Source: Carpediemonas membranifera BICM
Taxonomy: Eukaryota > Protista > Fornicata
DNA length: 64,000 bases
NCBI GenBank assembly: GCA_019828565.1
Contig: JAHDYR010000022.1
Location: 154,885-218,884, forward strand
Direction: 5' to 3'
A program made the position numbers and the translations under genes. The notes under the pieces are model-generated. The model was given only the letters and a program-made list of their open reading frames with translations. It ran no database searches and was not told the DNA's origin. Below are positions 47,456-64,000 of the stretch, piece after piece. Numbering within the stretch: position 1 is the first letter of the stretch; every line of letters starts with the position of its first letter.

Positions 47456-49586
47456 ATGGAAACGTTCAAGATCTTAAGCCTGAACACTCAGGGGCACATA
47501 GGACGAGGAAAGGACTTCACGGCATCAATAGCAACAGCAATTCAAACCAAACTCAGAGACATTGAAGCGGTTTGTATACAAGAGACATGGAGAACAGCAA
47601 ACACAAGAGTCCACAGCTTCATAGACTTCCAGTACGCTTTTGCAGGCAGAGAAACAGAGGAAACACTAGCAACAACGAACGAAAAGCGGAAAAGAGAGAC
47701 CAGGTGCCAGCATCGCGTGAACAGACAACTGGGAATCACAGGTGACGACCCCCTACACCCAAGTGGCACGGGACCAGAGAAGGCATCGGCACAATCGTAA
47801 GCCCGCATGCCAGAGCAACATGGGATGTCGGCATCACTGACAGCCTGTCAGGAAGAGTGCAGGCGAGTATTATGAGGACGAGCAGAGACATCATGGTAAT
47901 CACAGTGTATGCACCCACTTCAGATAAAGGGAAGACAGTGAAAGATCAGTTCAGAGACAACATCCAAGAGATACTGGACATGAAAGGGGACATGGAAGCA
48001 ATCATCATTGGGGACTGGAACATGGCCCCAGGGCCGGCACACGGAACCACCAGGTGGAAGGATGTTATGGACAAACACAAACTCAGAGCAATCATACCAG
48101 AGAGGGGCACATTATCCAGTGGCAACACCACACCGGACTTCGCAATGGTCTCAGAGGGAATCAGGAAAGCAGAGATTCAAGTGGTCAGCTCGACAGTGCT
48201 GGGAGTATGGGGGTCGGCCCACGAAGGGGTCAAGCTTGCCTGGGAAGAACCCCGATACAGAGCCAACAGAGACGATGACAGTGGCCTGGAAATGCCAGGA
48301 GTGCACACATGGAATATGAAAGGGAGGGAGGGCCACACAACAATCAAGGAGCTAGACAGAAACGGATCGATAGATCAGTGGGAGGAGACAATCAGAGCCT
48401 GCCTGGGGGAACCAGCCGGGAGAAGAGAGCCAAGCCACGAGAGCAGATAGTACAAGACAGCGCATGGGCCGACCTCCATGAAACAGAATGGTCAGAAGCA
48501 GGCAACAAGGTGAGGACGAGACTAATGAACAGCGAACTGAAGAAGTACTGGGACAAACGCAGAGAAGAGTGGATAGCCGACCTCAGCAAGAGCACAAGAG
48601 AGGGATACAAAGCATCGAGATCAATGGTAGAGGCTGCAGTCAGAAGATGGTGGTGCGACAACCAGTACAAAGGGATGCCTGGCAGCCTGCTCAAGGACGG
48701 AATGATCACCACGGACAAGGCCACGATCAGCGAAATCCTGCTTAAGCAGTACGCGAAGGTAAGTAGAGGCAGAGAACCAGAGTGGAAGGAGTGGCCTGGC
48801 ATAGGAAGGGACGAATTCTCCAAGGAGGAAGTGAAAGCAGCCATCAGTAAGATTAAGAGAGACACAGCCCCGGGCCCAGAGAACACAACAGGGACCATGC
48901 TAAGAGAACTCAATGAGCGAGGACTCAAGGAGCTTACCAGATTTATGAACAGGGTATATAGAGAAGGGAAGATCCCAGAGACGTGGAAATACGCAACAGT
49001 GTCAGCTATCCACAAGACCGGAAAACTCAGAGTTAAGCCAGAGTCGTATAGACCCATCTCGCTCACCCCGTTGCTGTACAGAGTATACGGTCGGCTGTTA
49101 AAGAAGAGACTGGAGAAGGCCACCAAAAGGTTCATACCCAGAGAACAGGCAGGATTCCAACCTGAAAGGGACGTAGTGCAGCAGATCCAGTATATAGTGC
49201 AGAGACACCAGGAAGGGGGGGAGACGACCTCAGTGTTCCTAGACATAGAGAAGGCATACGACACAGTGCCAAGAGACACCCTGATGGACAAACTCCAGGG
49301 AATGGGAGTGGAGGCCCACCTTATCAGAGCAATCCAGAGCACACTACAAGAGACATGGATATCAGTGAAAGGGGCTAAGTCATGGGAAAGGACAAACAGG
49401 GGGGTGAAGCAAGGGTGCGTACTAGCCCCGACCCTGTTTGTTCTCTTCATGGCAAACTGGCCCCACCTGGTCAGGAAAAAGCACATGAGCGAGCCCTATG
49501 ATATCAGAGAACCACCAGTGGAAACAACAAGTACCAGAGACCCACTCCCGGCAGTGCTAACCATGTTTGTGGATGACATACTGTAA
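47456..49586 (+). pseudogene. LINE APE endonuclease-reverse transcriptase (frameshifted, truncated)
   Basis: ILSLNTQG, CIQETW, TVYAPT, IGDWN, SAH (APE); APGPE, YRPISL, QAGFQ, FLDIEKAYDTV, GVKQGCVLAP, FVDD (RT). Confidence 0.93.
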
Positions 49587-50039
49587 GAATGGCTAGAGTC
49601 TCCCGGGAGATACCCTGGAGATACTCCAAAAAGTGCAAGAAAAAATGAGATTCACTAGAATCTGTTTCACATTTCACATATTTCACAAGAATATGTGAAA
49701 TGAGAAGCAAAGCTAGTGAATGTCATTTTTACTTGTCCCTCATCGTCTGTATGGCATCTATAAACAAATCGCGTATCTCTTGCAGCAGAAACTCTGTGTC
49801 ATTCACCTTTTTGTTGATTTCTTCTTCCTTTCGCAAGCCCTGAGCAGTTTTTCGGATTATTTGGTAAGAATCTTGTACTTTGGCAACTTCCACGAGCCCT
49901 GACGTTACCGTTTCTACCTTTTGGTGGCTAGTTGCTCGAATCATGACCGACAAATGTCGCAGTTTTAGGTATTGTCAATGCCAGGAGTCTACGTAAATAG
50001 ACAAATGTAACAACGTAAACAGCTTGGATAGAAATTCTC

Positions 50040-51264
50040 ATGAATTCAGAAGTGTCTGTACCAGAACCTATTGCTGCTACGCCCCCCATCAGACAGTATG
50101 GCAACAGTAAGCTCGCAAATCTCCGTCGTTCATTTGTTACAGCCGTTGTTTCTTCAGTATTTGAGGACGACGAGGCAACTGACCTCGGCTTGAGTGCACG
50201 CGACATCCATAAGGTACTTCTGGAGGTCCAGCGCAGGGTCGCCGCCGAATGCCCTGGGTTCAAGTCAATTGAACTCCGGGAACAGGTCAGGCGGACGACT
50301 GTTGTCGGCGTTACTGCGTTTATAACAGCAGTTAGACCCTCTGCGGAGTACAATGGCTCTGTCATGCAGCACATTGCTGTCCGTAGTCAGCCCTGCCATG
50401 CCGAGTTCCGCCAGATGCTCTCAGATGTTCTCTCAGATGCTGGACTGAACGATGTTTCCGACTCAATCAGCCTTGAGAACTTGCCTGTGATCAACCGGGT
50501 GAGATATAAGCCTGTCAAGCAAAAAGGCAACGGTCAAATCGACCCCGACTACGATGATCAAGGCAGAGATCCCACCGATACGGTCGACTACGCAACTGTC
50601 TTCACTTGGTGTTGGTGATGAAGCAGACACACCTCAGTCAACGACAGATCGATCGGTGCCGGTTCGGAAGAAGATCGTCTTTGACGACGAGGAAGCCAAG
50701 CGACCCAGGCTTGGTGACGACGATCTGCAGCAGGTGTCTAACAACGTGTCCGATGCTGTTGTTGACCGTATTAAGGTCCTGATCAATGACGTTGTCTCAG
50801 AGACCCGTGTGAGAGACCCGCCTACCGAACCCGAGACATGTAAGACGACTTTCCTTAGCCTTCATCAGCGCAAAATGCTATTTGGATGTCTTGTGTGTGG
50901 TACCCCCGAGTGGTTCTTCAATCCAGACGGCACTACGTTCAGGAGATGCTGTGCTTGCAAAGGTTTCCTGCACGAGCAATGTGTCAGGACGAAGGGCAAG
51001 AAGGACTACTGTCCCGCGTGCTATATTACCGGCTCTAGCAACAAGTGCCAGGCGTGCAAAAAGGGCCTAAGATCCAAGAACACGAAGAAAGCAGAAGAAC
51101 AGGCTTCTACTCTTCTTTGCTGCCGAGGCTGTCACTGGTGGTACTGTGAGCATTGCTCTGAGGAAGTGCAGTACACCATTGATGGCAAGTTGTACATCGT
51201 TCCCCTCTGCAGCAAATGTAAGGTTGTCTATAAGCGAGTAGAGGGCATGAGACCGATTGTTTAG
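50040..51264 (+). CDS. Protein with C-terminal PHD-like zinc fingers (ORFs 50040-50618 and 50554-51264, probably one gene)
   Basis: CLVC...CCAC...HEQC...CPAC (C4HC3), then CQAC...CRGC...CEHC...CSKC. One-base shift at the CCCC near 50545. Confidence 0.72.
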
Positions 51265-51307
51265 TGTTTAGTGAGAGATGATCATAAATTGTATATATAT
51301 CTGTTTA

Positions 51308-52312
51308 CTACACGTCTCTCTCAAGCGCACGGGTCATCATGCTTATGTATCGATCATTCATAAGTCTTCTCTGGTCGGTTCTTAACGGGTCATACTCGTT
51401 GACATCAGAAACGATGTCTTGCATTTCAGGAAGAGGAATGGGCCGGGCATAGCTAGTCTCAGACATGATGACCCTGGCCTCGTTGGGAAATGACAAGGAA
51501 CCATTGGCTATAATCCGTCTTCCTGCTGAGCCAGGCGCGAAACGATAGCCAGAGAAGTACTTCGTCAGAAAGAAAAGAGGATTGTCGAGGCATGTCACGC
51601 GGTAGAGCCAATAGGCGTCCTGGAGAACAAGCTCATGCGCCAGAACCTTCTCAGGAGTGAGGATAATGCATGTGTTCTTGTACTTGGCTGTCGAAATAGC
51701 ACTGCACAGCTGAGACTCCTCAGATCTGTCGAGTCCGGAGCAGGTGGCAAAGTAAATCAGACGCACACGCGTCGATCTCACCAAGGAAGGGCTCTCGAAT
51801 GACCTGAGGATGAGCTGGACCAGATCATGGTGATACAGAAACTCGTTCGTAGACGTATCAATGATCATACGCGACGTTTCTGTATCAGAATGACCCGATA
51901 TCACCCAGTAAGTGTCGAAGTTAGAGTACTGCGACGCCAACTCCTCAAGTACCTCGGCCAGATGGGACGTAGACTTAAAGGTGCGGGCAACGGCAGTCAG
52001 CCACTCATCATCAACGAGCTCTAGAGCCGTCTTGAGCTTGAAATGATAGCCAGATGAGTTGGCAAGACTTTCCACGCGGAAGACGGGGTAGGGCTGAGTC
52101 GGGGTCTCGAAACCATGCAGCGGCTCGATGGTGATTAGCACCCGTCGGTTAATCAACTTCTCTGTTGTAAAAGGACACTCGTGAGAGGAAGAAGACTTGA
52201 AACCGATCCCGCGATGTCCACGCCTGAGCTGAACCTTACCACAGACACATTCAAAGACTTCTTGGTCCTTACTGATGCGTCGCGTGCCGAATTCTCCGTA
52301 TTTCTCGTCCAT
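51308..52312 (-). CDS. Hypothetical protein, possible CHAT/caspase-fold protease with an N-terminal Zn motif
   Basis: WVISGHS and LIYFATCSG place His and Cys at strand ends; N-terminal CVCG...HEC. Confidence 0.55.
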   Translation of the reverse strand: MDEKYGEFGTRRISKDQEVFECVCGKVQLRRGHRGIGFKSSSSHECPFTTEKLINRRVLITIEPLHGFETPTQPYPVFRVESLANSSGYHFKLKTALELVDDEWLTAVARTFKSTSHLAEVLEELASQYSNFDTYWVISGHSDTETSRMIIDTSTNEFLYHHDLVQLILRSFESPSLVRSTRVRLIYFATCSGLDRSEESQLCSAISTAKYKNTCIILTPEKVLAHELVLQDAYWLYRVTCLDNPLFFLTKYFSGYRFAPGSAGRRIIANGSLSFPNEARVIMSETSYARPIPLPEMQDIVSDVNEYDPLRTDQRRLMNDRYISMMTRALERDV

Positions 52313-52507
52313 TTGCAATGTGCCAATTTTTTTTTCATGAATGGCACATTTTGATTTGAAGCAAAGGACAAGCTTTTTGATCCAAGTAAAGAGGTATACC
52401 TTCATTGCTACACTATTTATGCATGCTACTGCAGTATTGTTCGGATCTGATCAGCGATGCGCCTGTTCTTCGGATCGGGAGTTGCGAGAAAAAAAGAGAA
52501 CGAAGAT

Positions 52508-53469
52508 ATGGCGAGAAGAAAGATGCCCGCAAGGAAGCAGCAACCGGTAGGTAAGAGAAGGACTCAAAATCCACCCAACAAGACTTTTGAGTCATCTGCT
52601 TCTCCGCAGGATCAACGTCCTGCGGAAACTACTGTAACGGCAGCATCACCTCCTCCTCCGCCTCCCGAGTCGCCCGAGGATGGTAAGGAGCAAGATTCTC
52701 CTCCTCCTCCGCCTCCCGAGTCGCCTTCCCATTCATCCAGCTCGTCTGAAGCCGAGGAGGACTCCGTCGAGGGGTCCGTCATGCACGTCCACCCTAGGTG
52801 GACGCATGTTCTACCCGGGTTCAGACCTGCAGGACGTCAAGCGGCTGATTTCGGATGAGATAAGCCTTCAGGCCATTCCTGTCTCCGGCCTGGATCTCAT
52901 CCGAGACCCGTTGCGACCCCCGTCTGACCCAGGAGCCCGACCATCCGGCCCTCAACCGGACGCAGAGCGTCGGCCGAGGCATGATTGCCACTGAGGATAT
53001 CTCAGCTGGCACATGTCTCGGCATATACTTCGGGAAGCTGATTCCCGATGCTGAGACGGCCAGCAACAACGGCCAGATGGTGTTTGTTTCGCATATTCCA
53101 TTACCATTACACAGCATGTCATTCGCTGACAGTCAGGTCGCCGTCGATGCCATGTCGGCCGCAGCGGGTGTCCACCTGATTAACCACAGCCCTGACGATG
53201 TCAACTGTGAGTTCGTGGACGTCTTGGTGGATGGCCTGCCAGTGATATCGGTCAGGGCCACTGCCAACATCGTTCGCGGCGAGTTCTTGCGCATCGATTA
53301 TGGCGAGACCTACTTTGAGGCCGATGAAGAGGAGCACCCGGTTGCTCGCTTCAAGAGTCTCGCCATAGATGACCCTCACTACCTCGCTCGAAAGGTGGAG
53401 CAGTTCAAAAATACTGCAGGTCAAGCCGCAGCCCCGCAAGCGGAAGACCAAGTCCAACCCCGCCCGTAA
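52508..53469 (+). CDS. SET-domain lysine methyltransferase with an H3-like N-terminus (two homopolymer frameshifts)
   Basis: GRGMIATEDI, YFG, LINHS...NC, ATANIVRGEFLRIDYG..YF. The frames link at GGGG near 52770 and CCCCC near 52918. Confidence 0.82.
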
Positions 53470-53542
53470 GCGCTTCCACACTGCGCGCATGACTCAAGGC
53501 AAGAGTGAATAAACTTGAAGAGATATCAATTCAATCAATCAT

Positions 53543-54916
53543 TTATGAGCGGGTGACATCCTCCGGACGAGTAGCACGCTTCTCGGGCTCTGCGGCAGCT
53601 GCCTTGCGCTTGCGGTCCGGAAGACTGTAGACACAGGCATGACGATTCTCGATGACAATGAACTGAGTGAGCTTCATGCTCTCACAAAGACCTAAGATCT
53701 TGTCCAGCGTCGCATCCTGGATGGGCAAGAACTCTGAATCTTCCCAACCTTTGTGGACCCAGAGGCAGGTAAGGTCCTCGTCGATCTGGGTGATGATTAC
53801 CGGAGTGTGACTCAGCTCTACACTGGCCTGGATGGCCTCATGGTCTGCCCAGGGGAAAGGGGAGCCAGGCATCTCAGAGAACGGGTCGCCCTCGAACCCC
53901 TTGCCCTCACAGAAGGATCGGATGTCCTCGTACAGCTGAAGCTTCTCACCAACAGTAGGCTGGGACCCAGTCCTGATGAGATGCATGGCGCTGAGAATGC
54001 ATGAGCCATCCCCAGGCACCTCAGACCGCTTCAGAGAGCTTGTATCGTTCTTAAACTTCTTAGCGGTCTTCTCCATGATGGTCTGGACGTCATCTTTGGG
54101 GTCTGCGGCCACCAAAGCCTCCCGATCCAGGTCTATGACCTCAGCCTCCTTCTTCAAGGGCACAAGCTTCTCCGTCTCGAGCTTTTCAATCTTGGCCCGG
54201 GCTCGCCAAAGCTCCCTCTTCAAATCACGGATCGCACCGTTGTGTTCCACGGCAAGATGGCGGCGCAGGAGGCGCGATGTGCCACTCAGGGTACTTCTGT
54301 GGACGGGAGAGTCCATCAGAAGCGCGTCCAGGTGCCTTATCCGGTCGAACTGCACGTCGACCGGGTCCGACAGCTCAGGCTCGGCGTTGTTCTTGAACGA
54401 ACGGACGACCCCCGACCTTCCTGGCTTCACCTTGCGCATTATGCGCTCACGGAGCAGCGAAAGGACTGAATAAGCAGGAGTTATTTGGAGTACTTACCTC
54501 CAACGTCGTGCTCGTGATCCGAAGACACTTCTCGGCGGACCTTCTGGACAAGGCTGTCGTAGGCATGATCTCCCATGACCTTCTTCAGCTCAGCCGATGT
54601 CGTGATCAGCTCAAGCTGAGCCTCGGCAGTTTCTCTTAGGTGCAGGATAAGGTGAGGCGACCTGAAGAGCTTGCGAAGCGTTTTCCAGCCAATATCTGTG
54701 TAAAAAGGTATGGGGAAAGTACTTACGATCACGAAGAAGGGCGGTGAGGATCTTGTCATCGGGCAGAAGGAACTTACGAAGAAGTGAGCACTTGATCATC
54801 TCCTGCGCGTTTGATGAGGCCTGACTGATCTCAGCGCTGTCATAGAAGATAAAGAACTGCTTACCAAACGTTTTCGAACGCTTCAAGAGCATGTAGAAGT
54901 CGAAAACCGATTGCAT
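53543..54916 (-). CDS. OTU-like cysteine protease/deubiquitinase, 3 exons (54916-54727, 54695-54498, 54465-53543), 436 aa
   Basis: VPGDGSCILSA, WAD and terminal NRHA. Two GTAAGT...CAG introns (31 and 32 nt) join three ORF-track frames exactly. Confidence 0.8.
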
Positions 54917-54948
54917 GATTATAAGGCTCTCAGGACCTAATGAAAAAA

Positions 54949-55016
54949 TTCATAAGGCTCTGAGAGCCTTATACACGATTTCGAATTGGTGTATAAGGCT
55001 CTGAGAGCCTTATGAA
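54949..55016. repeat. 68-bp nested inverted repeat
   Basis: 28-bp arms, each containing the palindrome ATAAGGCTCT-G-AGAGCCTTAT, with a 12-nt spacer. Confidence 0.9.
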
Positions 55017-55542
55017 CTCAGAGGAGGTCCTCGGGGCACTTCGGTGCAGAATTTTGATTGGGCATCTGATTGGACCATGGGGCGGATGCTCAGAGGGATG
55101 AATGCGAGCTCAATGGAGACCATTGGACATGTCATAGATGGCATGTCCAGGTGAAGGTCCATCATGGAAGGAGCCATTCACGATAAGTCTTCTAAATGTT
55201 GTGTTGCGAGCGTCTGAAGGGCTTTCTCTGGATACCGACCAAGATGGAGGTCACGTGGATCAACGGACGATAATTGCGGTATTCTGGCCTTGTATGCCAC
55301 TCTTAAATCCATTGTTTGATCCATTCCCGCGTTTATAGTTCATCTCAACGCTTCCTCGACGAGTTACAATTGTTGATGTTGTTTAGGTTCTATTACAGGC
55401 CATTCGAGGCCACAGAGCTCTCATGATGTTGTTTTAGTGATATACACATGCTTGCCAGCGTTTGAGGATCGATACTCTTCTCCTTTCTTCGTTTGGTTTT
55501 CTAATTTCGTTGCGAGCATAAAGTGCACCTTGAAGAAACGTT

Positions 55543-58500
55543 ATGCCTCCGAAACGGAGTAATTCTGCTAAGAGCAAGGGCAGAAAGCGTCTAAACGCTG
55601 TGGAGATGATTTCTACTTACTTAGAGAAGGAGCACGCTGCTGGAAGCATCTCCGCTGCCGATGTCGCCACCGGAAACCGCATTTGCAATGAGGTGGTTGA
55701 CAGACGCCCCAATGACCTCCCCACATTCGTTCCGGTGTCACCGGTCTATAAACTGCTCCGTCCAGTTTTGACCACTTTTACCCCGCTGCGGTTTACTGTA
55801 AATGATTTCAACCGACAATACTAGTATTAGCTGTGCTGATGTCGTTAACTGTTCAAATTCCTGAGCTTTCTCCTTCAAATCTAACACTAGAGACTCTTGA
55901 GGAGTTTGAGCGCCGAGCAACGATTTTTACTATACAAAACCCAAGCATCCCACTGTCCGTCCTCATTGAGGAGTCATTTGCCCTCGAACTCAAGGCCGAA
56001 GGCATAGACACATCCGACAAGAACTACACTCTCAAGAACTTCACCGAATGGTGTCGCCAGCGGCTCCTTCCCCACTCCATCCTAGCACTCGTCGAAGAGC
56101 TCCAAGACCTTCGTTTCCCCATGGTGCCGAGCACCGCACGCAACTTCGAAGCTGGCACGAGACTACAAGCGGCAGCATTCCGCAAGCGCATCGAGCTCTA
56201 CTCCAAGACGCCAGACCCAGAAGGGTTCTTGGACCCCATCGACGACAACCCCAATGCCGACGAACTGCTCGCAAGCTTTGATAAGCTGGCTGCACGGCTC
56301 TTCAGGGAGTCCCTGAACCCGACAGCATTCCGCAAGAAGGCACAGACCTTGCTTGCTCTCCACAACGTCAAGACCTTCGAGGACACCGTAGCGGTGGCTC
56401 TTAGGGCTGCTAGGGCGTATGACCATGATCAACCCCTCTCGCAAACCCCGGCCGGCGGACCCAAGGCCCCGGCCCAGGCCAGGAAGGCCCAGTACCGCCC
56501 GGACGCGGCTAAGCGCCCGCCGGCCGACGGACCCAAGAAGCCGTCGCGCCCCTGTCGTTTCTGTGGCGGTCCCCACATGGACTTCAGATGCGATAAGCAC
56601 CCCCGCTACAGCGAGAACAACAACGCCGACAGCGCGTCGACTAACGAGAAGGGCGGGAAGGGTCCACTGACGACCCCCGCTACTGTAAAAGGCAAAACTT
56701 ACTCGTTCGTTGTAGACACTGGTGCAAGCCGAAGCTTCATTAGTTCGAAGGCACTACGTACCCTACCCAAGGACACAGTGCAGACCTCTCTCGAGGAAAA
56801 GATCAAGGTCACGCTAGGAGACGGACGCTCCCTCGTGACAGATCAAGCAGTCACATTTAAGGCAGCATTCCCAGCACTAGGTGTCACACCGTTGGAGGTT
56901 ACATGGAAGTACTACGTACTCCCCGGTGAGTTCTTCAAGGCTCTCATCGGGTGTGACTTGCTGAGGTCACTCGCACTCATTGGCGATGGCACACTCAACC
57001 TTAACCTGCACAAGCTCTCCTCAATTGAGGGAGGACGAGGACTGGCTGCCGTTCTACCATGAATATCTCACGGAGGACGCAAACATGGCGATAACCGACG
57101 ACTACTGTGGTGTCCACGTCCCGGAGTCGAAGATCCGACCCGAGATTCTCGAGATAATCAACTCATTTGACGATATCTTCGAGGAAGAACTACCCAAGGA
57201 AGGGTCTCGACTGGAACCCATGTCGATTGAACTGATAGACGAGCGGGCAATTGTACAATGCCGCGCTCGCAGACTCGACCCAGTGACCCAAGGCCTGGTG
57301 TCGACAGAGCTAGAACAACTCAGGCGAGACGGGATAATCCAGGACTCGACTGGGCCGTACAGCTCGCCGATCGTAGTAGTCAGGCAGGGCCACAAAGGAT
57401 CGACCAAGATCCGTCTTTGCATTGACTACAAGGAGTTAAACTCCAAGACAGTGAGGGATAACTTCCCCTGCCTAACACGCGCGAGTTTGTAGACCGAGCA
57501 TCAGGCTGCAAATACTTTGCAGGCCTAGACCTCAGACAAGGCTACTACCAGATGCGGATGCACGAGGAAGATATCCCCAAAACCGCTTTTGTCACTCCAG
57601 ACGCATACTGCGAGTTCACCAGATGTCCATTCGGCCTGATGAACGCCCCGGCGAGATTCCAACGCGCCATGCAGAAGGCGTTCGCCGAGGTCCTCCACAA
57701 AGGGGTGGACATCTATCTTGACGACATCTTGATTTACGCCAAGACCGAGGCCCAGTTTCTCACCCTGATCAAAACCGTCTTCAGGATCTGTAGACATTAT
57801 TCACTGCGCCTTAAAGGCCCGAAGTGCACGATAGGCTCAGCCCACGTCGAGGCCGTCGGGTATATTGTCTCGGAGAAGGGGAAACAACTTGCCCCAGAGA
57901 AGGTAGAGGCGGTAAACGCCATACCGCTCCCGTCCACCGCAAAGGAGCTTCAGAGGACACTGGGATCATTCAACTATGTCGTCCAGTTCGTCCCGGACTC
58001 ATCACGAATCCTCAAACCTCTCAACGAGATGCTAACGGCACAGGAGAACTCAAAGAACATAACTTGGAACCCCAAACAAGAAGAGGCGTTTACAACGTTC
58101 AAGGAGAGACTCAGCTCAGACACAGTCCTCCATTTCCCCGACTTCTCAAAGAAGTGGACCCTCGAGACGGACGCGTCGAACGACGGACTAGGGGGCATTC
58201 TGTTCCAAGAAGACGACTCCGGCAACCGAGAGATCGTCTCGCTCTTCGCAAAGTGTCATACGCCAACCCAGACTAGGTGGCCGACCTACGAACAAGAGCT
58301 TCATGCTATCATCTTTTTGTCTCACGAGACCTGACATGGCTCAACTTTTCCGCCTCAAGGACAACATACAGATCCGCACCGACCACCAGAATCTGGTATA
58401 TCTCATGCAGAGGAAGGAGCTTTCCAAGAAACTCCTCAGGTGGACGTCTGTCTTGTCGGACTACAACATTACGATCGAGCATATTGCTGGAGAGACAAAC

Positions 58501-60591
58501 AAGATGGCAGACATGCTGTCGCGTATCCTTCCCCGAGGGGACCTCGGGCCGCAGCTGAACCTGCTAGAGGCGGAGGACGCCGGCCCAGGGCTGACCCTTG
58601 AGTTGATCCAGGCTGCCCAGGCCATGGCACCTGAGTCAACTCGAGTCGGCTGGGAGAAACTAGAGGGAGTATCCATCGAAAACTCGATCTACTTCAAGGA
58701 CGGAGTGCCGATTATCCCCAAGGGAGAGACACGCGACAAGGCCCTTCGGACCGCTCACCAATTTCATACGGGAGCAAATTCAACGTTCCAAGCACTCGCC
58801 ACGTCTGCATTTTGGCCGGGGATGCTCTTGGACGTCAAAAAGCACATCAAGACGTGCCCCCATTTGTCTGAAGACTCGCATCAAGGACTACTTTATCGCC
58901 CAAAAGGGCCAGACAAGACGCACCAGACCATGGGAGACAGTGGCAGTCGACACAATTGGCCCTCTCCCAACGGATTCGCTGGGCGCTCGCTACATCATTG
59001 TGGCTGTAGACATGTTTACAAGATACACCGAGCTCGTCGCAGTCGCATCGATCGACGCCGAGACCTCCGCCAGGGCCCTATGGGACCACGTTTTCACGCG
59101 ACACGGGATACCGGCGGAGATTCTGTCCGACGGCGGCCCGGAGTACGCGAACTCGATAGTTGAACAACTCACAACGTCATTGAAAGTCGCACACCACTTC
59201 ACCATCCCGTTTCATCCACAGAGCAATGGTCTCGTGGAGAGAAGGAATGCGGAGATTGGAAGACACCTACGGTGGCTTGTCCTGGCAATAGCCTACAAAG
59301 ACCAGTGGTGCGGACTCCTACCGACGGTCCAGATGATTATCAACGGCACGACACATACGGCCACGAAGTTCTCCCCGCACGAGCTGATATTTGGCCATGA
59401 GCACAACATGTTTACAAGCTGGTGGACGAACGACAACAACTCTCCGATCAGAGATTTCCCAGAGTTCAAAAAGGACCTGGAGCTGGCCCTTAACGCCCTG
59501 GAGACCACTGCCAGAGAGAGTGTGGGCCCGGGCCAAAAGACAATAGTCAACACCGAACTGAAGCCGGGTGACTACGTCCTCTGGAAAGATGAGGCCCCTC
59601 AGAAGCTAGACGCGCGCAACAGGGGCCCATGGAAGGTACACGATGTACTTGATAATAACAGAATAGTCCTGCAGTCGATACTCGACGGATCGACCAGATC
59701 AACCCACATTGAAAAACTCATGATGTTCGACACGGATGCCGTAACGGACACGATGATGCTTCAACTTGCAAGCTTCGACCAGAAAAAATGGGAGGTAGAG
59801 CGAGTAGTATCGGTAGACTGGAAAGAAGGGACAGCCGCCATCAAGTGGGTAGGATTCGAAAACATAACGGAAGAACCACTCTCGGGAGTGAAACACCTCG
59901 AGGAGATGAAGAGGTTGGCCCGTAAGGCAAGGAAGAACCTGAAACTCTACTAACCATCTTTTTCCCCCGTTCCTTGCAGGTTGGGGGTTTTCTCATCAAA
60001 AAGGGAGGTAGTGTCACCGGTCTATAAACTGCTCCGTCCAGTTTTGACCACTTTTACCCCGCTGCGGTTTACTGTAAATGATTTCAACCGACACCGGAGG
60101 ATCTTAGGGATGAAGCGGAGTTCCGTACTCTCGACAGCATCGAGAAGATCATGGCGCAGTTCAAGGGCGAGTCTTCTGAGGCCAAGGAGAAGCGCTTCAG
60201 GGCCCTCATCAGCCTGGACGCCGAAGGAGATGAGGTCGACCATGGCAGCCCTCTCTTGGCAACTGTCCGTGAGTACCGCGAGCTGTTCCACGGCATCCCT
60301 CAGTCGGTCCGCCCCCGCGCTTACGCCTTCGTCGCCCAGAGGCTTGGTATCTCTGTCGACAAGGTCAGAGAGGTCCTTCTGGAGAGTGTGTGCCGCAAGG
60401 ACTCTAAGCTCATCTTCGAGCGTCCGCAGCTTGTCCTCAAGAAGCACTCGAAGACCTTCAAGGACCTCGCCGCTGTGATTGAGAAGAGGAACGCTGCCCG
60501 TGCCGCTGCAGAGGCTCGTGATGTTCTGCGTATACCCGTTTACGCGAGCCTCCTGCTCTTCCACGCAGCTAACGTCAACTCAAATGAGTAA
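55543..60591 (+). pseudogene. Hypothetical gene of about 228 aa (55543-55735 + 60098-60591) disrupted by gypsy A2
   Basis: Removing the element and one TSD gives an in-frame ...LPTFVP|EDLRDEAEF...MAQFKG. Confidence 0.8.
55736..60093 (+). mobile_element. Ty3/gypsy chromovirus-like element A, copy 2 (4358 bp)
   Basis: Near-identical inverted copy of 31934-36289; LTRs 55736-55817 and 60012-60093; CCGG TSD. Confidence 0.97.
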
Positions 60592-60611
60592 TAAATCGAC
60601 TGCTTCTTCAT

Positions 60612-61566
60612 TTAATCTTCATTCTCTTCCTCATCTTCCTTCTCAGACAGCAGATGGTACCACTCTTCCTCGAAATAGTTCTCTTTCTGGTAATCCTTAC
60701 GCATCTTTGATCTCTTATCCACGATCTTTTGGACCAAATCCCTTCGGTTGCTGTCGTAAAGGGCGATGATTATCTCACGTTGCTTCTTGCGCGTCGGGTG
60801 CGGGGTAACACTCTTCCTCAGACGCTTAATGTAGCGGTTGAGCTTGTCCGAGGGCTTGGTGGGCAGGGTGGGTTGGGTGGCTTGGGTTCTCTTTGGGGAG
60901 GCTGGACCTGGTCCACAGAAGTGAAAGCCGTACCGTAGTCGACGGACGGGGAGCCCTCCAGGACTTCATGGCATATCCATGGCAAGCAACGAGACTCTCA
61001 CCGAGCTTCGTCCACTTGTTCGGGCCGTATGTTGCCTCCATGGTCACCAGTTTCGCATCATCCAGGTACTCCATCGTGGACTTTTGCTTGGAGATGGACA
61101 TCCCCATACGCTGGTAGGCTGGCACAAGAGAACTTACACACTGCAGGCGGATCCTCTGTCCGGCAGAGGCAACCGAAAGAAGAATCGTGGCGAGACCATT
61201 GCCCCTGGCATAGAATGCCGTGCGAATAACCACAACATATAAGTCCTGGCGCAGCTCGGAAGGGGTTTCATCAGTAGCTTCGGTGTTGTATGACTCCTTC
61301 GTGAGCAACAAGGCCGAAATGATGGAATCAGTCTTGCAGTCACGAATCGCAACCAATCTGGGTAAATACCTGGGCAACACTGGGTGAACAAACATGAAGA
61401 AGCGATGATCGATGTCATCAACTCCTCTCGTGGCAACGTCCTGCTTAAAAAACGTACGGACACTGGGGATGATGTCTGACTTATCAGAAAGTCTTATGTA
61501 CTGTATATAAGCCTTATGGGCTGCAAGAGTATCCTCTGTCCAAGATTCTTTCCCCGTTTGGTTCAT
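60612..61566 (-). CDS. GNAT-family acetyltransferase-like protein (probable frameshift near 60950)
   Basis: LYVVVIRT...ARGNGLATILL (motif A) and LQCVSSLVPAYQRMGM (motif B). A shifted frame continues to an acidic tail ending at 60612. Confidence 0.72.
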
Positions 61567-61692
61567 TTTCACAAACTTTTGTGAAACCTGCGAAATGTGA
61601 AATGTGCCATTCATGAAAAAAAGTGGCACATATGAAAAATGAATGAATTTATCACGGAACCATCTTACATCACTTTATATCACGCGGATGCC

Positions 61693-64000
61693 TCAATTCT
61701 GTCTGCTACACTCTCCACACAGGCAGCAAACTAACTCTATGCCATGGTCCGCCAGACTGCATGACATCGTGCCCTCCTCACCCCACGTCAGCGTCGTATG
61801 CTCTTCTACAAACTCCCACACTTCATCAACAGTCTCCTGAAAGGTCTGGATCATCTCACGAGTTGGCTCGAAGGTCACGGTGGTCAGTGTGCGGACACCA
61901 AACCAATGCTTCGCATCCTTACAGCAGTCGTGAACTCGCACACACTTGAGTCGCTGGAGCTGGGGGACAGAGTAGTCCTGCCGACCAAAAAGAACGCATG
62001 CCCGTCAGGAAGGAACACGCGAGAGTTGTCTGCTCGATCAAGCAAATGCCCTCAAGGACTGCCTTCCTGTGCAACTTGGCTGCTACCTCCTGGTTCTTGA
62101 TGAACTCTCGCTCAAAGTACTCCTCTAGGATATAGAACAGCGGCACCTTGAGATGCTTGTGGCACAGGGGCTGCGTCGTGAGTCTGCTGATGCTGTAGAG
62201 GTTCTCAGCGCACGGTTTTCTCCTTCGTCTTCGCTTCGCTGCTTGATAGCAGGGATATGGAAGTCTTATCCTTGTTAGGAATGAACGCAATCGTGACGTG
62301 AATGAGGTGGGCCACTGCGGCAGCCATGAAGTGAAACGCGACAGCCGCGTCAGTCACAGGTTCGGACGAGTAGTACATGGCCTGGAGGTAGCCAATGAGC
62401 CGAATGATATCTTGAATGCACTCAGGGAGAGCAACGTAGTCCTCTTGGTCGTGGCAGCCATCCTTACACGTGCGGACGACTGCTCGTTACAACCTACGGT
62501 CCTATCGATGCTTCGCATGGACGACATACGGCCAAGCTTGAGGTTGAGGAGCTTATTCTGGATGATCTCCTCGCGGGACCCGCGGGTGGTGGGATGCTTC
62601 TTGAAAGAACCACAGATATGGGCAACCTGCTCGAGTAAACGGTGCGAGTCGTGCATGAATGGAGGGCATATGACGATCTTCTCAAGAGGGATGACACTAC
62701 AATTCTCGAATACCATGCGTTCATTGGTGAAATCGCCATAGATTGCAAGTACATCTTGAACTCGGTTCGGGTCGTCGACTTCAGCCTGGTATGCTGTCTT
62801 ATCGTCCAGGTTGTCCTTGATGGTGAGACGATGGCGGCCTGCTATCGGGTGGAGCGCCTTACTTTTGTGGTAAATCGTGTTGCAAGGGTGTGGATAGTTG
62901 GGCCGGCCCGACTTTCTGGACAGCATGTGGCGGAGGGCGGCATGATCGCCCATGACGATGACATGGTCGAAGATCGTGACCTCACCAGTGTCTCTGATGG
63001 GTATCTGACTCGTGTATAGGCGCTCAATCTCCTTCTCGACGCGAGAAAGAGACTCTTCCATCAACAAATCACCCTCGCTACCCATATACTCGACTATACG
63101 GAAAGGTGGAGTAATCTTGTTGGGGAATGTGAAGCCTGTGGGGTCGTAGATGCGGAGCTTGAAGGCAGCAGAACCCCCTTTCCACCCGTCAAGCCATAGT
63201 AGGATCTTCATGGGGCTAAACGTGACTCCAACCCTGTTGCCAAGGGCATTCTTGCATCGAACGTAGTTGGGCTGGTCCGACTCGAGCCATTCCGGGTGGC
63301 GAACAGCTTGCTTGAGGTAACGAACGGCATCAAACCAGACTCGATCAACCTTGTCCCATGTGGAGCTGTTGAGCCGCTTGCCGAGGGTGACTCCCTGGGT
63401 CTGCTTGAGCTCAGGGCGATGACTTGTGGCCTCATCGCTCGTCTCGTAGTGAAGATCAAGCATTGGCTTCTCCCACTTGAAGTCAATGACGTTCTCCCGC
63501 GTCCGTCAGGGGCTGGATATCGACACCCTCGTCCACCGTTAGGCGATTGGTGCACTCGAGTCTCGACTTTGTGCCATTTCTGCCCCACCGCCAGGTCGTG
63601 TTGACTGTGACAGACTCCACAGGGACGAGATGACCCAAGAAAGCAACCTCTGGTCTAGTCAGCGCTGCAACCAGGCCGTTGATCTTGGTGATATTGACCT
63701 GCAACTGCTTCACGAAGATATCAGCAGCCTTGCTGGAGATGATTGGCATATGAAGTCGCGCAGAAAGACTACGGATGAGCTTAAAGAGCTCATGGGTTGC
63801 GTTACAACCCGACTTGATGTACATCAGGATAGAAACAAGCTCCAAAAATCTGCTTGTAGTTGTCAGTTTCCTCAGTTGAGACCTCGTGCTGTCTCCGCAA
63901 GCGTTCGTGGGTGACAGCAATACGCGCGTGGTCACGTACGAAGACATCGAAGGTCGGGGCGACTCCTCTATGGGAACGTACTGCACGCAAGAAGGGTCGA
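61693..64000 (-). pseudogene. DDE transposase-like gene (CACTA/Mirage/Chapaev-Transib-like motifs), multiple frameshifts
   Basis: LWLDGW (D1), VMGDHAALRHML..G..HPC (D2), PPFMHD and ILEEYFE (E), spread over ORFs 63483-63986, 62354-63463 and 61919-62290. Confidence 0.62.

Follow-up and report, generated by a model that had tools for sequence, protein, structure and literature searches.

What is the block of genes that breaks into a long interspersed nuclear element (LINE) reverse-transcriptase gene close to the end of a contig of the metamonad Carpediemonas membranifera BICM, and does it move as one unit? The stretch that we analyzed, 64,000 nucleotides long and here called the window, is C23:154885-218884 of the C. 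membranifera assembly (GCA_019828565.1, contig JAHDYR010000022.1; 24.2 Mb, 69 contigs), and an earlier note made from its letters had taken the block for a giant DNA transposon with a toolkit for modifying chromatin. Our results suggest that window positions 49577-64000, an inserted retrotransposon included, are in all probability a copy of an autonomous and very recently active DNA transposon of 11.3 kb (family I), with terminal inverted repeats (TIRs), a transposase of the RAG1/Transib fold and a set of accessory genes.

Boundaries, copies and transposase of the element

The open reading frame (ORF) of the LINE reverse transcriptase into which the element is inserted (48309..49576, plus strand) matches Pfam RVT_1 with an E value of 2.5e-28, and the match stops at profile position 157 of 205, the gene being severed at its FVDD motif. 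In a BLAST comparison of window positions 49001-64000, homology with element copies elsewhere starts at 49576/49577 in every copy; the interruption at FVDD that the earlier note had described is real, but the junction is at 49577 and not at 49584. In other copies this terminus, CATACTGTAAGAATGG..., is found next to nine unrelated flanks, and the junction is therefore not the misassembly that the note had considered as a possible source of error. The left TIR (49577..49626) is 50 bp long, begins with CATACTG and agrees at 49 of its 50 bases with the reverse complement of the right end of a copy on contig C4. Contig C23 stops at window base 64000, about 1.2 kb short of the right TIR; the window copy holds 10.06 kb of the 11.3-kb element, with the remainder past the contig end, and the right end of the element was read from other copies. 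In nine of these, homology stops 1,204 nt beyond the end of the window, at the reverse complement of the left terminus, and a full copy rebuilt from two overlapping loci on contig 4 measures 11,338 bp, with 50-bp TIRs that match at 49 of 50 positions. One full copy lies at C4:453911-465238. The termini have the form 5'-CA..TG-3' (CATACTG...CAGTATG), and the flanking dinucleotide is shared in three of four copy pairs (AA, CT and TC; chance about 1e-3), as expected of a 2-bp target-site duplication (TSD). Both the TIRs and the TSD for which a search had been proposed could in this way be found through other copies. Tiles taken 17-29 kb from the element start have nothing in common between copies, and the element is therefore 11.3 kb long and not giant.

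A whole-genome search returned about 17-21 full-length matches with 98-100 % identity, plus many fragments, on at least 15 contigs. About 20 copies are collinear at about 99.85 % identity, with TIRs in common and different flanks, and ten copies compared over 5.3 kb differ by 0.15 % substitutions. Together with the order and orientation that four accessory genes keep beside the transposase, this strongly supports the proposal that the genes travel as one mobile unit, and other copies with the same gene order, which had been suggested as a check, exist both as these approximately 20 copies and as diverged families. As a single unit the block stands only in part: 49577-64000 is composite, and 55736-60093 belongs to a separate retrotransposon. 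The family makes up about 1 % of the genome and has been annotated as scattered 'hypothetical proteins'; two annotated proteins, P0001 and P0002, are transposase fragments.

The published C. membranifera genome combines Nanopore and Illumina sequencing (PMC8516963). Among the copies we counted 22 indel events, most of which affect a single base in a run of A, T or C; the sites of the breaks differ from copy to copy, and several ORFs of the window copy are frameshifted relative to others. Because the copies break at different places, mostly by homopolymer indels, the frameshifts of the window copy were not taken as proof of decay. The homopolymer indels between copies look like Nanopore consensus error, so that gene models which fall within repeats cannot be relied on in this assembly.

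What is known of RAG1-like transposases comes mainly from animals, and the record of their earlier evolution is sparse. The transposase gene of the element (61693..64000, minus strand) would encode about 850 aa if uninterrupted, with its N-terminus beyond the contig end. In the window it lies in pieces (61693-61941, 61919-62290, 62354-63463 and 63483-63986), while one copy has an ORF of 629 aa and another an ORF of 785 aa, and the sequence that we used comes from two copies, from the longest natural ORF of each. An exhaustive search with a profile brought up 19 relatives of 750-910 aa in C. membranifera, in one unannotated NCBI assembly and in metagenomes, and none of the 19 has a Pfam domain. 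An AlphaFold2 model built from the alignment of relatives (predicted local distance difference test, pLDDT, 84.5; predicted template-modelling score, pTM, 0.83) was compared with the PDB by Foldseek: the top 45 matches were all RAG1, the amphioxus protein BbRAGL or HzTransib (E 3e-9 to 8e-5, probability 1.0), and the next match had an E value above 0.01. In VIA-align the transposase matched RAG1 461-1008 with a Z score of 15.9 over 452 residues, the whole model being spanned; HzTransib followed with 14.8, BbRAGL with 14.0, and the P element transposase with 14.8 over 327 residues only. Language-model features point to the RAG1 and Transposase_21 clusters (score 0.91-0.93), and a search of NCBIfam at a loose threshold gave no transposase match. 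Two acids are invariant, D219 (in LWLDGW, at the end of the first strand) and D300 (in GDHAA, after the fourth strand). The transposase is thus predicted, from its model, to have a RAG1/Transib core fold. If the DDE-like transposase of the earlier note was the integrase, it belongs to the nested Ty3/gypsy retrotransposon, an outcome that the note itself had named as counting against its idea, but the element does have a RAG1/Transib-like transposase of its own at the right end.

The predicted fold, the termini and the TSD are the reasons for which we would place the enzyme nearest the CMCT group (EnSpm/Mirage/Chapaev/Transib), probably as a very divergent lineage. This group, whose members are EnSpm/CACTA, Mirage, Chapaev, Transib, Plavaka, ESTA as well as Lanisha, is characterized by CA..TG termini, TSDs of 2-5 bp and C(2)C/H(3-4)H motifs (Kojima 2025, PMC12730594). 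Our element resembles it in a core that is RAG1-like at the level of the fold, in CA..TG termini and in a 2-bp TSD, a length that Mirage shares and that falls within 2-5 bp, and some CMCT members too carry epigenetic enzymes. It differs in having no detectable sequence similarity to the group, in zinc motifs that are unconserved in family I and in a terminus that reads CATACTG rather than CAC.... The comparison with Transib and RAG1-RAG2 (ProtoRAG) is similarly divided. The best structural match is the whole catalytic core, RAG1 461-1008, and a separate PHD-like zinc-finger protein travels with the transposase, which is reminiscent of the PHD of RAG2; however, the TSD is 2 bp and not 5, the TIR starts with CAT and not CAC, and the element has neither TIRs resembling the heptamer and nonamer of recombination signal sequences nor a RAG2-like gene with a kelch propeller, the N-terminal part of the Cys-rich protein being left out of the modelling. 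A RAG1-like lineage that is invisible to sequence searches would exist in a metamonad and would still be active there.

Besides the window copy, another copy (L031:1220-2878, on contig C35) likewise lies within an ORF resembling reverse transcriptase, and family I elements seem to pile up in islands rich in transposable elements; the 19 flanks inspected show no target motif. Contig C25 (C25:1-4004) also ends within a copy, and the family is therefore one cause of assembly breaks.

Accessory genes and their order

The genes that family I shares with other families follow the order Cys-rich, caspase/CHAT-fold, SET, GNAT-like and transposase; family I also carries the OTU-like gene and a 228-aa gene. 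The same genome has at least two other families (II and III), in which homologues of the Cys-rich, caspase-like, SET and GNAT-like genes lie beside transposase homologues in the same order and orientation, a synteny that rests on match coordinates. At the C7 locus the matches are Cys-rich 380011 (+), caspase-like 380670 (-), SET 382327 (+), GNAT-like 386659 (-) and transposase 387837 (-); at the C19 locus they are Cys-rich 3197 (+), caspase-like 3920 (-), SET 5594 (+), GNAT-like 9739 (-) and transposase 10940 (-). Identities between families II/III and family I are 34-41 % for the Cys-rich, 49-57 % for the caspase-like, 45-50 % for the SET, 37-45 % for the GNAT-like and 44-57 % for the transposase proteins, and the genome holds a still more distant set of homologues, 27-31 % identical. 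In GCA_002919055.1, an unannotated eukaryote assembly, transposase homologues (26-29 % identity) adjoin caspase-like homologues (26-29 %) at two loci, L033 and L034; a Cys-rich homologue is present at one of them, and at both an ORF that faintly resembles SET is transcribed divergently. Since gene order has persisted across diverged families, it can be argued that selection keeps the accessory genes as parts of the element, and we infer that this selection acts on the element itself; their function does not follow from their persistence. The OTU-like gene was found by the genome search in family I only, and a word search for GNAT-like homologues also returned family I only. In all, the genome contains at least three further families of this kind of element, given here by coordinates only, at C7:380011-389921, C19:3197-13051 and C68:698292-706496; they have the gene order in common, and their proteins are 27-57 % identical to those of family I. 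The L033 locus is flanked by chromovirus fragments.

Among the accessory proteins, the SET protein is the only established enzyme of chromatin type, as judged by its sequence, and its role on a substrate is predicted. The gene (52457..53469, plus strand) has a basic Pro-rich N-terminal region and frame breaks in the window copy, and is a single 377-aa ORF in L031. The product matches Pfam PF00856 with an E value of 1.3e-9 (38.9 bits against a cut-off of 22.4), the NCBIfam LegAS4 model at 7.9e-11 and, in the PDB, LegAS4, KMT5A, MLL1 and ASH1L at 2e-7 to 1e-3; alignment to LegAS4 shows the NHS and DY motifs (INHS, RIDYG). The SET identity, which the earlier note had proposed, is therefore secure at the level of sequence.

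The second gene of the conserved set (51308..52405, minus strand) encodes a 365-aa protein with an N-terminal CxC..HxxC element, which had been seen as a His/Cys protease-like ORF, a description that its fold bears out. It has no Pfam match. The AlphaFold2 model is of moderate quality (pLDDT 63.6, core 70-89), and Foldseek matches it to caspases, MALT1 and SAVED-CHAT at E 1e-5. A wide VIA-align comparison that did not lean on Foldseek placed SAVED-CHAT first (Z 11.6), with MALT1 at Z 10.6, and language-model features indicate DUF6642/CHAT. Six homologues all keep GH142 and C192, with the His after one strand and the Cys after the next. The model demonstrates, within the limits of a prediction, a caspase/CHAT fold (clan CD), and peptidase activity is predicted. 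The annotated protein P0032 (J8273_6694, 'Swt1-like HEPN domain-containing') has a C-terminal part 54 % identical to the caspase-like protein of the element and could represent either a fusion or a chimeric gene model.

For the Cys-rich, OTU-like and GNAT-like proteins the names given in the earlier note stand as motifs, coherent but short of proof. The Cys-rich gene (50040..51264, plus strand; 407-414 aa in intact copies) ends in two PHD/RING-like Cys/His clusters, and is frameshifted in the window into ORFs 50040-50618 and 50554-51264, with an intact 407-aa ORF at L031:3339-4562. The spacing of the proposed tandem PHD-like fingers, CxxC-x15-CxC-x4-H-xx-C-x9-CxxC, is readable in the ORF, but neither Pfam nor NCBIfam gives a PHD or RING match at loose thresholds, the nearest results being a sub-threshold Rubicon-homology zinc domain (E 4e-4) and RING at E 1.4. 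The OTU-like gene (53543..54759, minus strand) has two exons and a GT..AG intron at 54466-54497. Searched as its large exon, it shows a VPGDGSC catalytic loop that aligns to OTUD3, but this best PDB match is weak (E 0.49), and no match appears in Pfam at E values up to 10 or in NCBIfam at loose thresholds. Similarly, the GNAT-like protein (60826..61629, minus strand) has a motif A (RGNGLA) and a motif B that align to a GNAT in the PDB, but the best match has an E value of 0.24, and neither Pfam nor NCBIfam gives a match at loose thresholds. The last gene encodes 228 aa with a weak region of helix-turn-helix (HTH) type (E 0.05-0.2); its 5' part (55543..55735, plus strand) and its 3' part (60098..60591, plus strand; placed by alignment to other copies) are separated by the retrotransposon, and an intact ORF is found at L031:8911-9597.

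Proposed roles, rival explanations and known systems

In the mechanism that we propose, the transposase would cut and paste the element through its TIRs. The element inserted into the LINE reverse-transcriptase gene, and a Ty3/gypsy retrotransposon later landed in the 228-aa gene of the window copy. The accessory proteins would most likely act on host proteins or on proteins bound to the element, by lysine methylation, acetylation, proteolysis and perhaps deubiquitination. By analogy with other epigenetic enzymes borne by transposons, this action could keep copies expressed or direct transposition, and a role in rewriting chromatin or in countering silencing is putative. A more ambitious version, which we regard as unlikely, is that the family belongs to a deep and unrecognised RAG1/Transib branch in metamonads and environmental eukaryotes, a multi-protein transposase machine in which a caspase-fold partner, a PHD-like histone reader and SET/GNAT-like writers would license the element's own expression or its choice of target. 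If true, this would offer a parallel, whether independent or ancestral, to the way in which RAG1-RAG2(PHD) couples transposition to chromatin state.

Several observations weigh against the reading of the element as an autonomous, recently active transposon with a RAG1/Transib-like transposase and enzymatic partners. Every copy examined has a frameshift somewhere, and most of the indels are homopolymeric in a Nanopore-based assembly, which blurs intactness; the fourth of the copy pairs compared shows no matching TSD. The transposase has no match in Pfam at E values up to 10, the Transposase_21 and RAG1 families included, and the 19-sequence profile has none among PDB sequences, so that placement in the CMCT group comes without a match at the level of sequence. 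For the third catalytic acid there are candidates only: the conserved LEExFER near residue 573 is favoured when positions are compared with RAG1 E962, and GCNEQ (E454) is another. Family I does not conserve the zinc motifs C(2)C and H(3-4)H that are typical of CMCT and RAG1; C(2)C is at the expected place only in P0019, the most distant homologue, P0008 and P0013 have C(4-5)C, and PPxMHxSH in the transposase provides a partly conserved H(2)H. The PHD, OTU and GNAT assignments are weak, being made on motifs that lack statistical support, and the activities and substrates of the accessory proteins are predicted only. Expression data come from a single small run (X1, of uncertain type, kept as contigs), the one public run that contains any of this sequence, and its coverage is confined to the OTU-like gene and the left subterminal region.

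The strongest rival, to which we give a real but clearly smaller chance, is that the accessory proteins serve the transposition machinery and not chromatin. The caspase-fold protein would process the transposase or be its partner, the TIRs or the TTTCACA modules would be bound, in the manner of TnpA in En/Spm, by the Cys-rich and HTH-like proteins, and the SET and GNAT proteins would modify the transposase or non-histone targets. The caspase-like and Cys-rich genes are indeed those whose link with the transposase persists even among the distant elements of GCA_002919055.1, repeated subterminal and 5' modules exist, and non-histone substrates are common among SET and GNAT enzymes. However, the nearest solved relatives of the SET protein are histone methyltransferases or histone-methylating effectors, and complex prediction detected no interaction between the transposase core and the caspase-like protein (score 0.00, which is no evidence either way).

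It is very improbable that the extra genes are host genes captured passively and without a role for the element, like the cargo of Pack-MULEs. The OTU-like gene, found in family I only and with a spliceosomal intron, looks as a recent host capture would, but for four accessory genes the open frames, the order and the orientation have been preserved between families whose proteins are 34-57 % identical, and for two of them the link with the transposase extends to another organism (GCA_002919055.1). We give even less credence to an integrated virus-like element or a segmental duplication of the host, which exact 50-bp TIRs, a 2-bp TSD, about 20 dispersed copies with unrelated flanks and the presence of a DDE-type transposase without capsid, polymerase or packaging genes all speak against; this is despite ORFs that look intronless and lie on both strands, SET and OTU-like genes among them, and some giant viruses do carry SET and OTU-like genes. 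Giant-virus and Polinton readings were rejected for their missing capsid and polymerase genes and the clean TIR/TSD junctions.

The preferred reading, that of a TIR transposon with accessory enzymes, has partial precedents. Fungal transposons carry TET/JBP, and VANDAL carries the anti-silencing factor VANC; our element would resemble these in bringing its own epigenetic modifier or anti-silencing factor, whereas theirs act on DNA methylation and nothing in the element points to DNA methylation. Closer in composition are the giant red-algal Plavaka elements, of the CMCT group, with accessory genes PAG1-3 that include an N6-adenine methylase-SET fusion and a ParB/2OG-oxygenase protein (bioRxiv 10.1101/2025.02.11.637652). 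In both cases an element of CMCT type carries several conserved accessory genes, one of them with SET, and repeat arrays adjoin an accessory gene; the present element differs in its stand-alone SET and in its caspase-fold, PHD-, GNAT- and OTU-like proteins, in its size (11.3 kb against 17-19 kb) and in its metamonad host. HarbingerS and MuDR elements of Phytophthora, as far as the Repbase Reports of 2014 are cited in PMC12730594, carry SET genes and so are likewise DNA transposons encoding a gene of the SET histone-lysine-methyltransferase type, but they belong to other transposase superfamilies and have a single accessory enzyme. SET-carrying transposons are thus already known, and the idea is not new. 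What is new is the metamonad host, the very divergent transposase of predicted RAG1 fold with a 2-bp TSD, the composition of the gene set and, most of all, the caspase-fold partner, which is constant. In the paper on the C. membranifera genome no word starts with 'transpos', and helitron-related helicase endonucleases are all that it notes (PMC8516963). After fungal TET/JBP and red-algal Plavaka, the element would be a third and differently composed example of transposons with their own epigenetic or protein-modifying enzymes, with an unusually large accessory set (SET, caspase-fold, PHD-, GNAT- and OTU-like proteins), and its approximately 20 near-identical copies could offer a tractable system in which to ask what such enzymes do for a transposon.

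Nested retrotransposon, repeats and expression

The separate element within the window copy is a Ty3/gypsy retrotransposon (55736..60093, plus strand), recognized by its Pfam domains, its long terminal repeats (LTRs) and its TSD. The LTRs are 82 bp long, 100 % identical and have TG..CA ends; the TSD, CCGG, is at 55732-55735 and 60094-60097, and Pfam identifies a protease, a reverse transcriptase, an RNase H, an integrase zinc domain and an rve integrase. It splits the 228-aa gene, which is an intact ORF in other copies, and is present in the window copy alone, all other copies joining 55735 directly to 60098. Its identical LTRs and its absence from other copies therefore mark it as a separate and very young insertion. 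The C-terminus of its integrase is chromodomain-like.

The shared intergenic motifs that had been noticed earlier correspond to a module of 36-40 bp, in which TTTCACA occurs three times and is followed by TGTGAAA, at three sites in the element. Module 1 (49665..49700, plus strand) is subterminal, about 90 nt inside the left TIR; the palindromic core of module 2 (61567..61586) lies directly 5' of the GNAT-like gene, the start of which is likely to be the downstream ATG just after this module; and a third module lies about 26 nt 5' of the transposase start. For the palindromic core there are two occurrences in the window, where 0.01 would be expected, and the modules, 5' of three genes, are probably promoter or regulator sites. 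Nested palindromes (54920..55016; inverted repeats I1-I3) are found between the OTU-like and 228-aa genes. This cluster is built on a ATAAGGCTCTGAGAGCCTTAT core, its length varies by about 40 nt between copies, and alignments of copies break at 54948-54979.

In the OTU-like gene, one contig of run X1 lacks precisely positions 54466-54497, which on the minus strand read as a 32-nt intron with GTAAGT..CAG ends, and the spliced exons form an open frame of 394 codons. Because the contig skips the intron and the joined frame is open, this gene is very probably transcribed and spliced. An intron of 32 nt is unusually short for a eukaryote.

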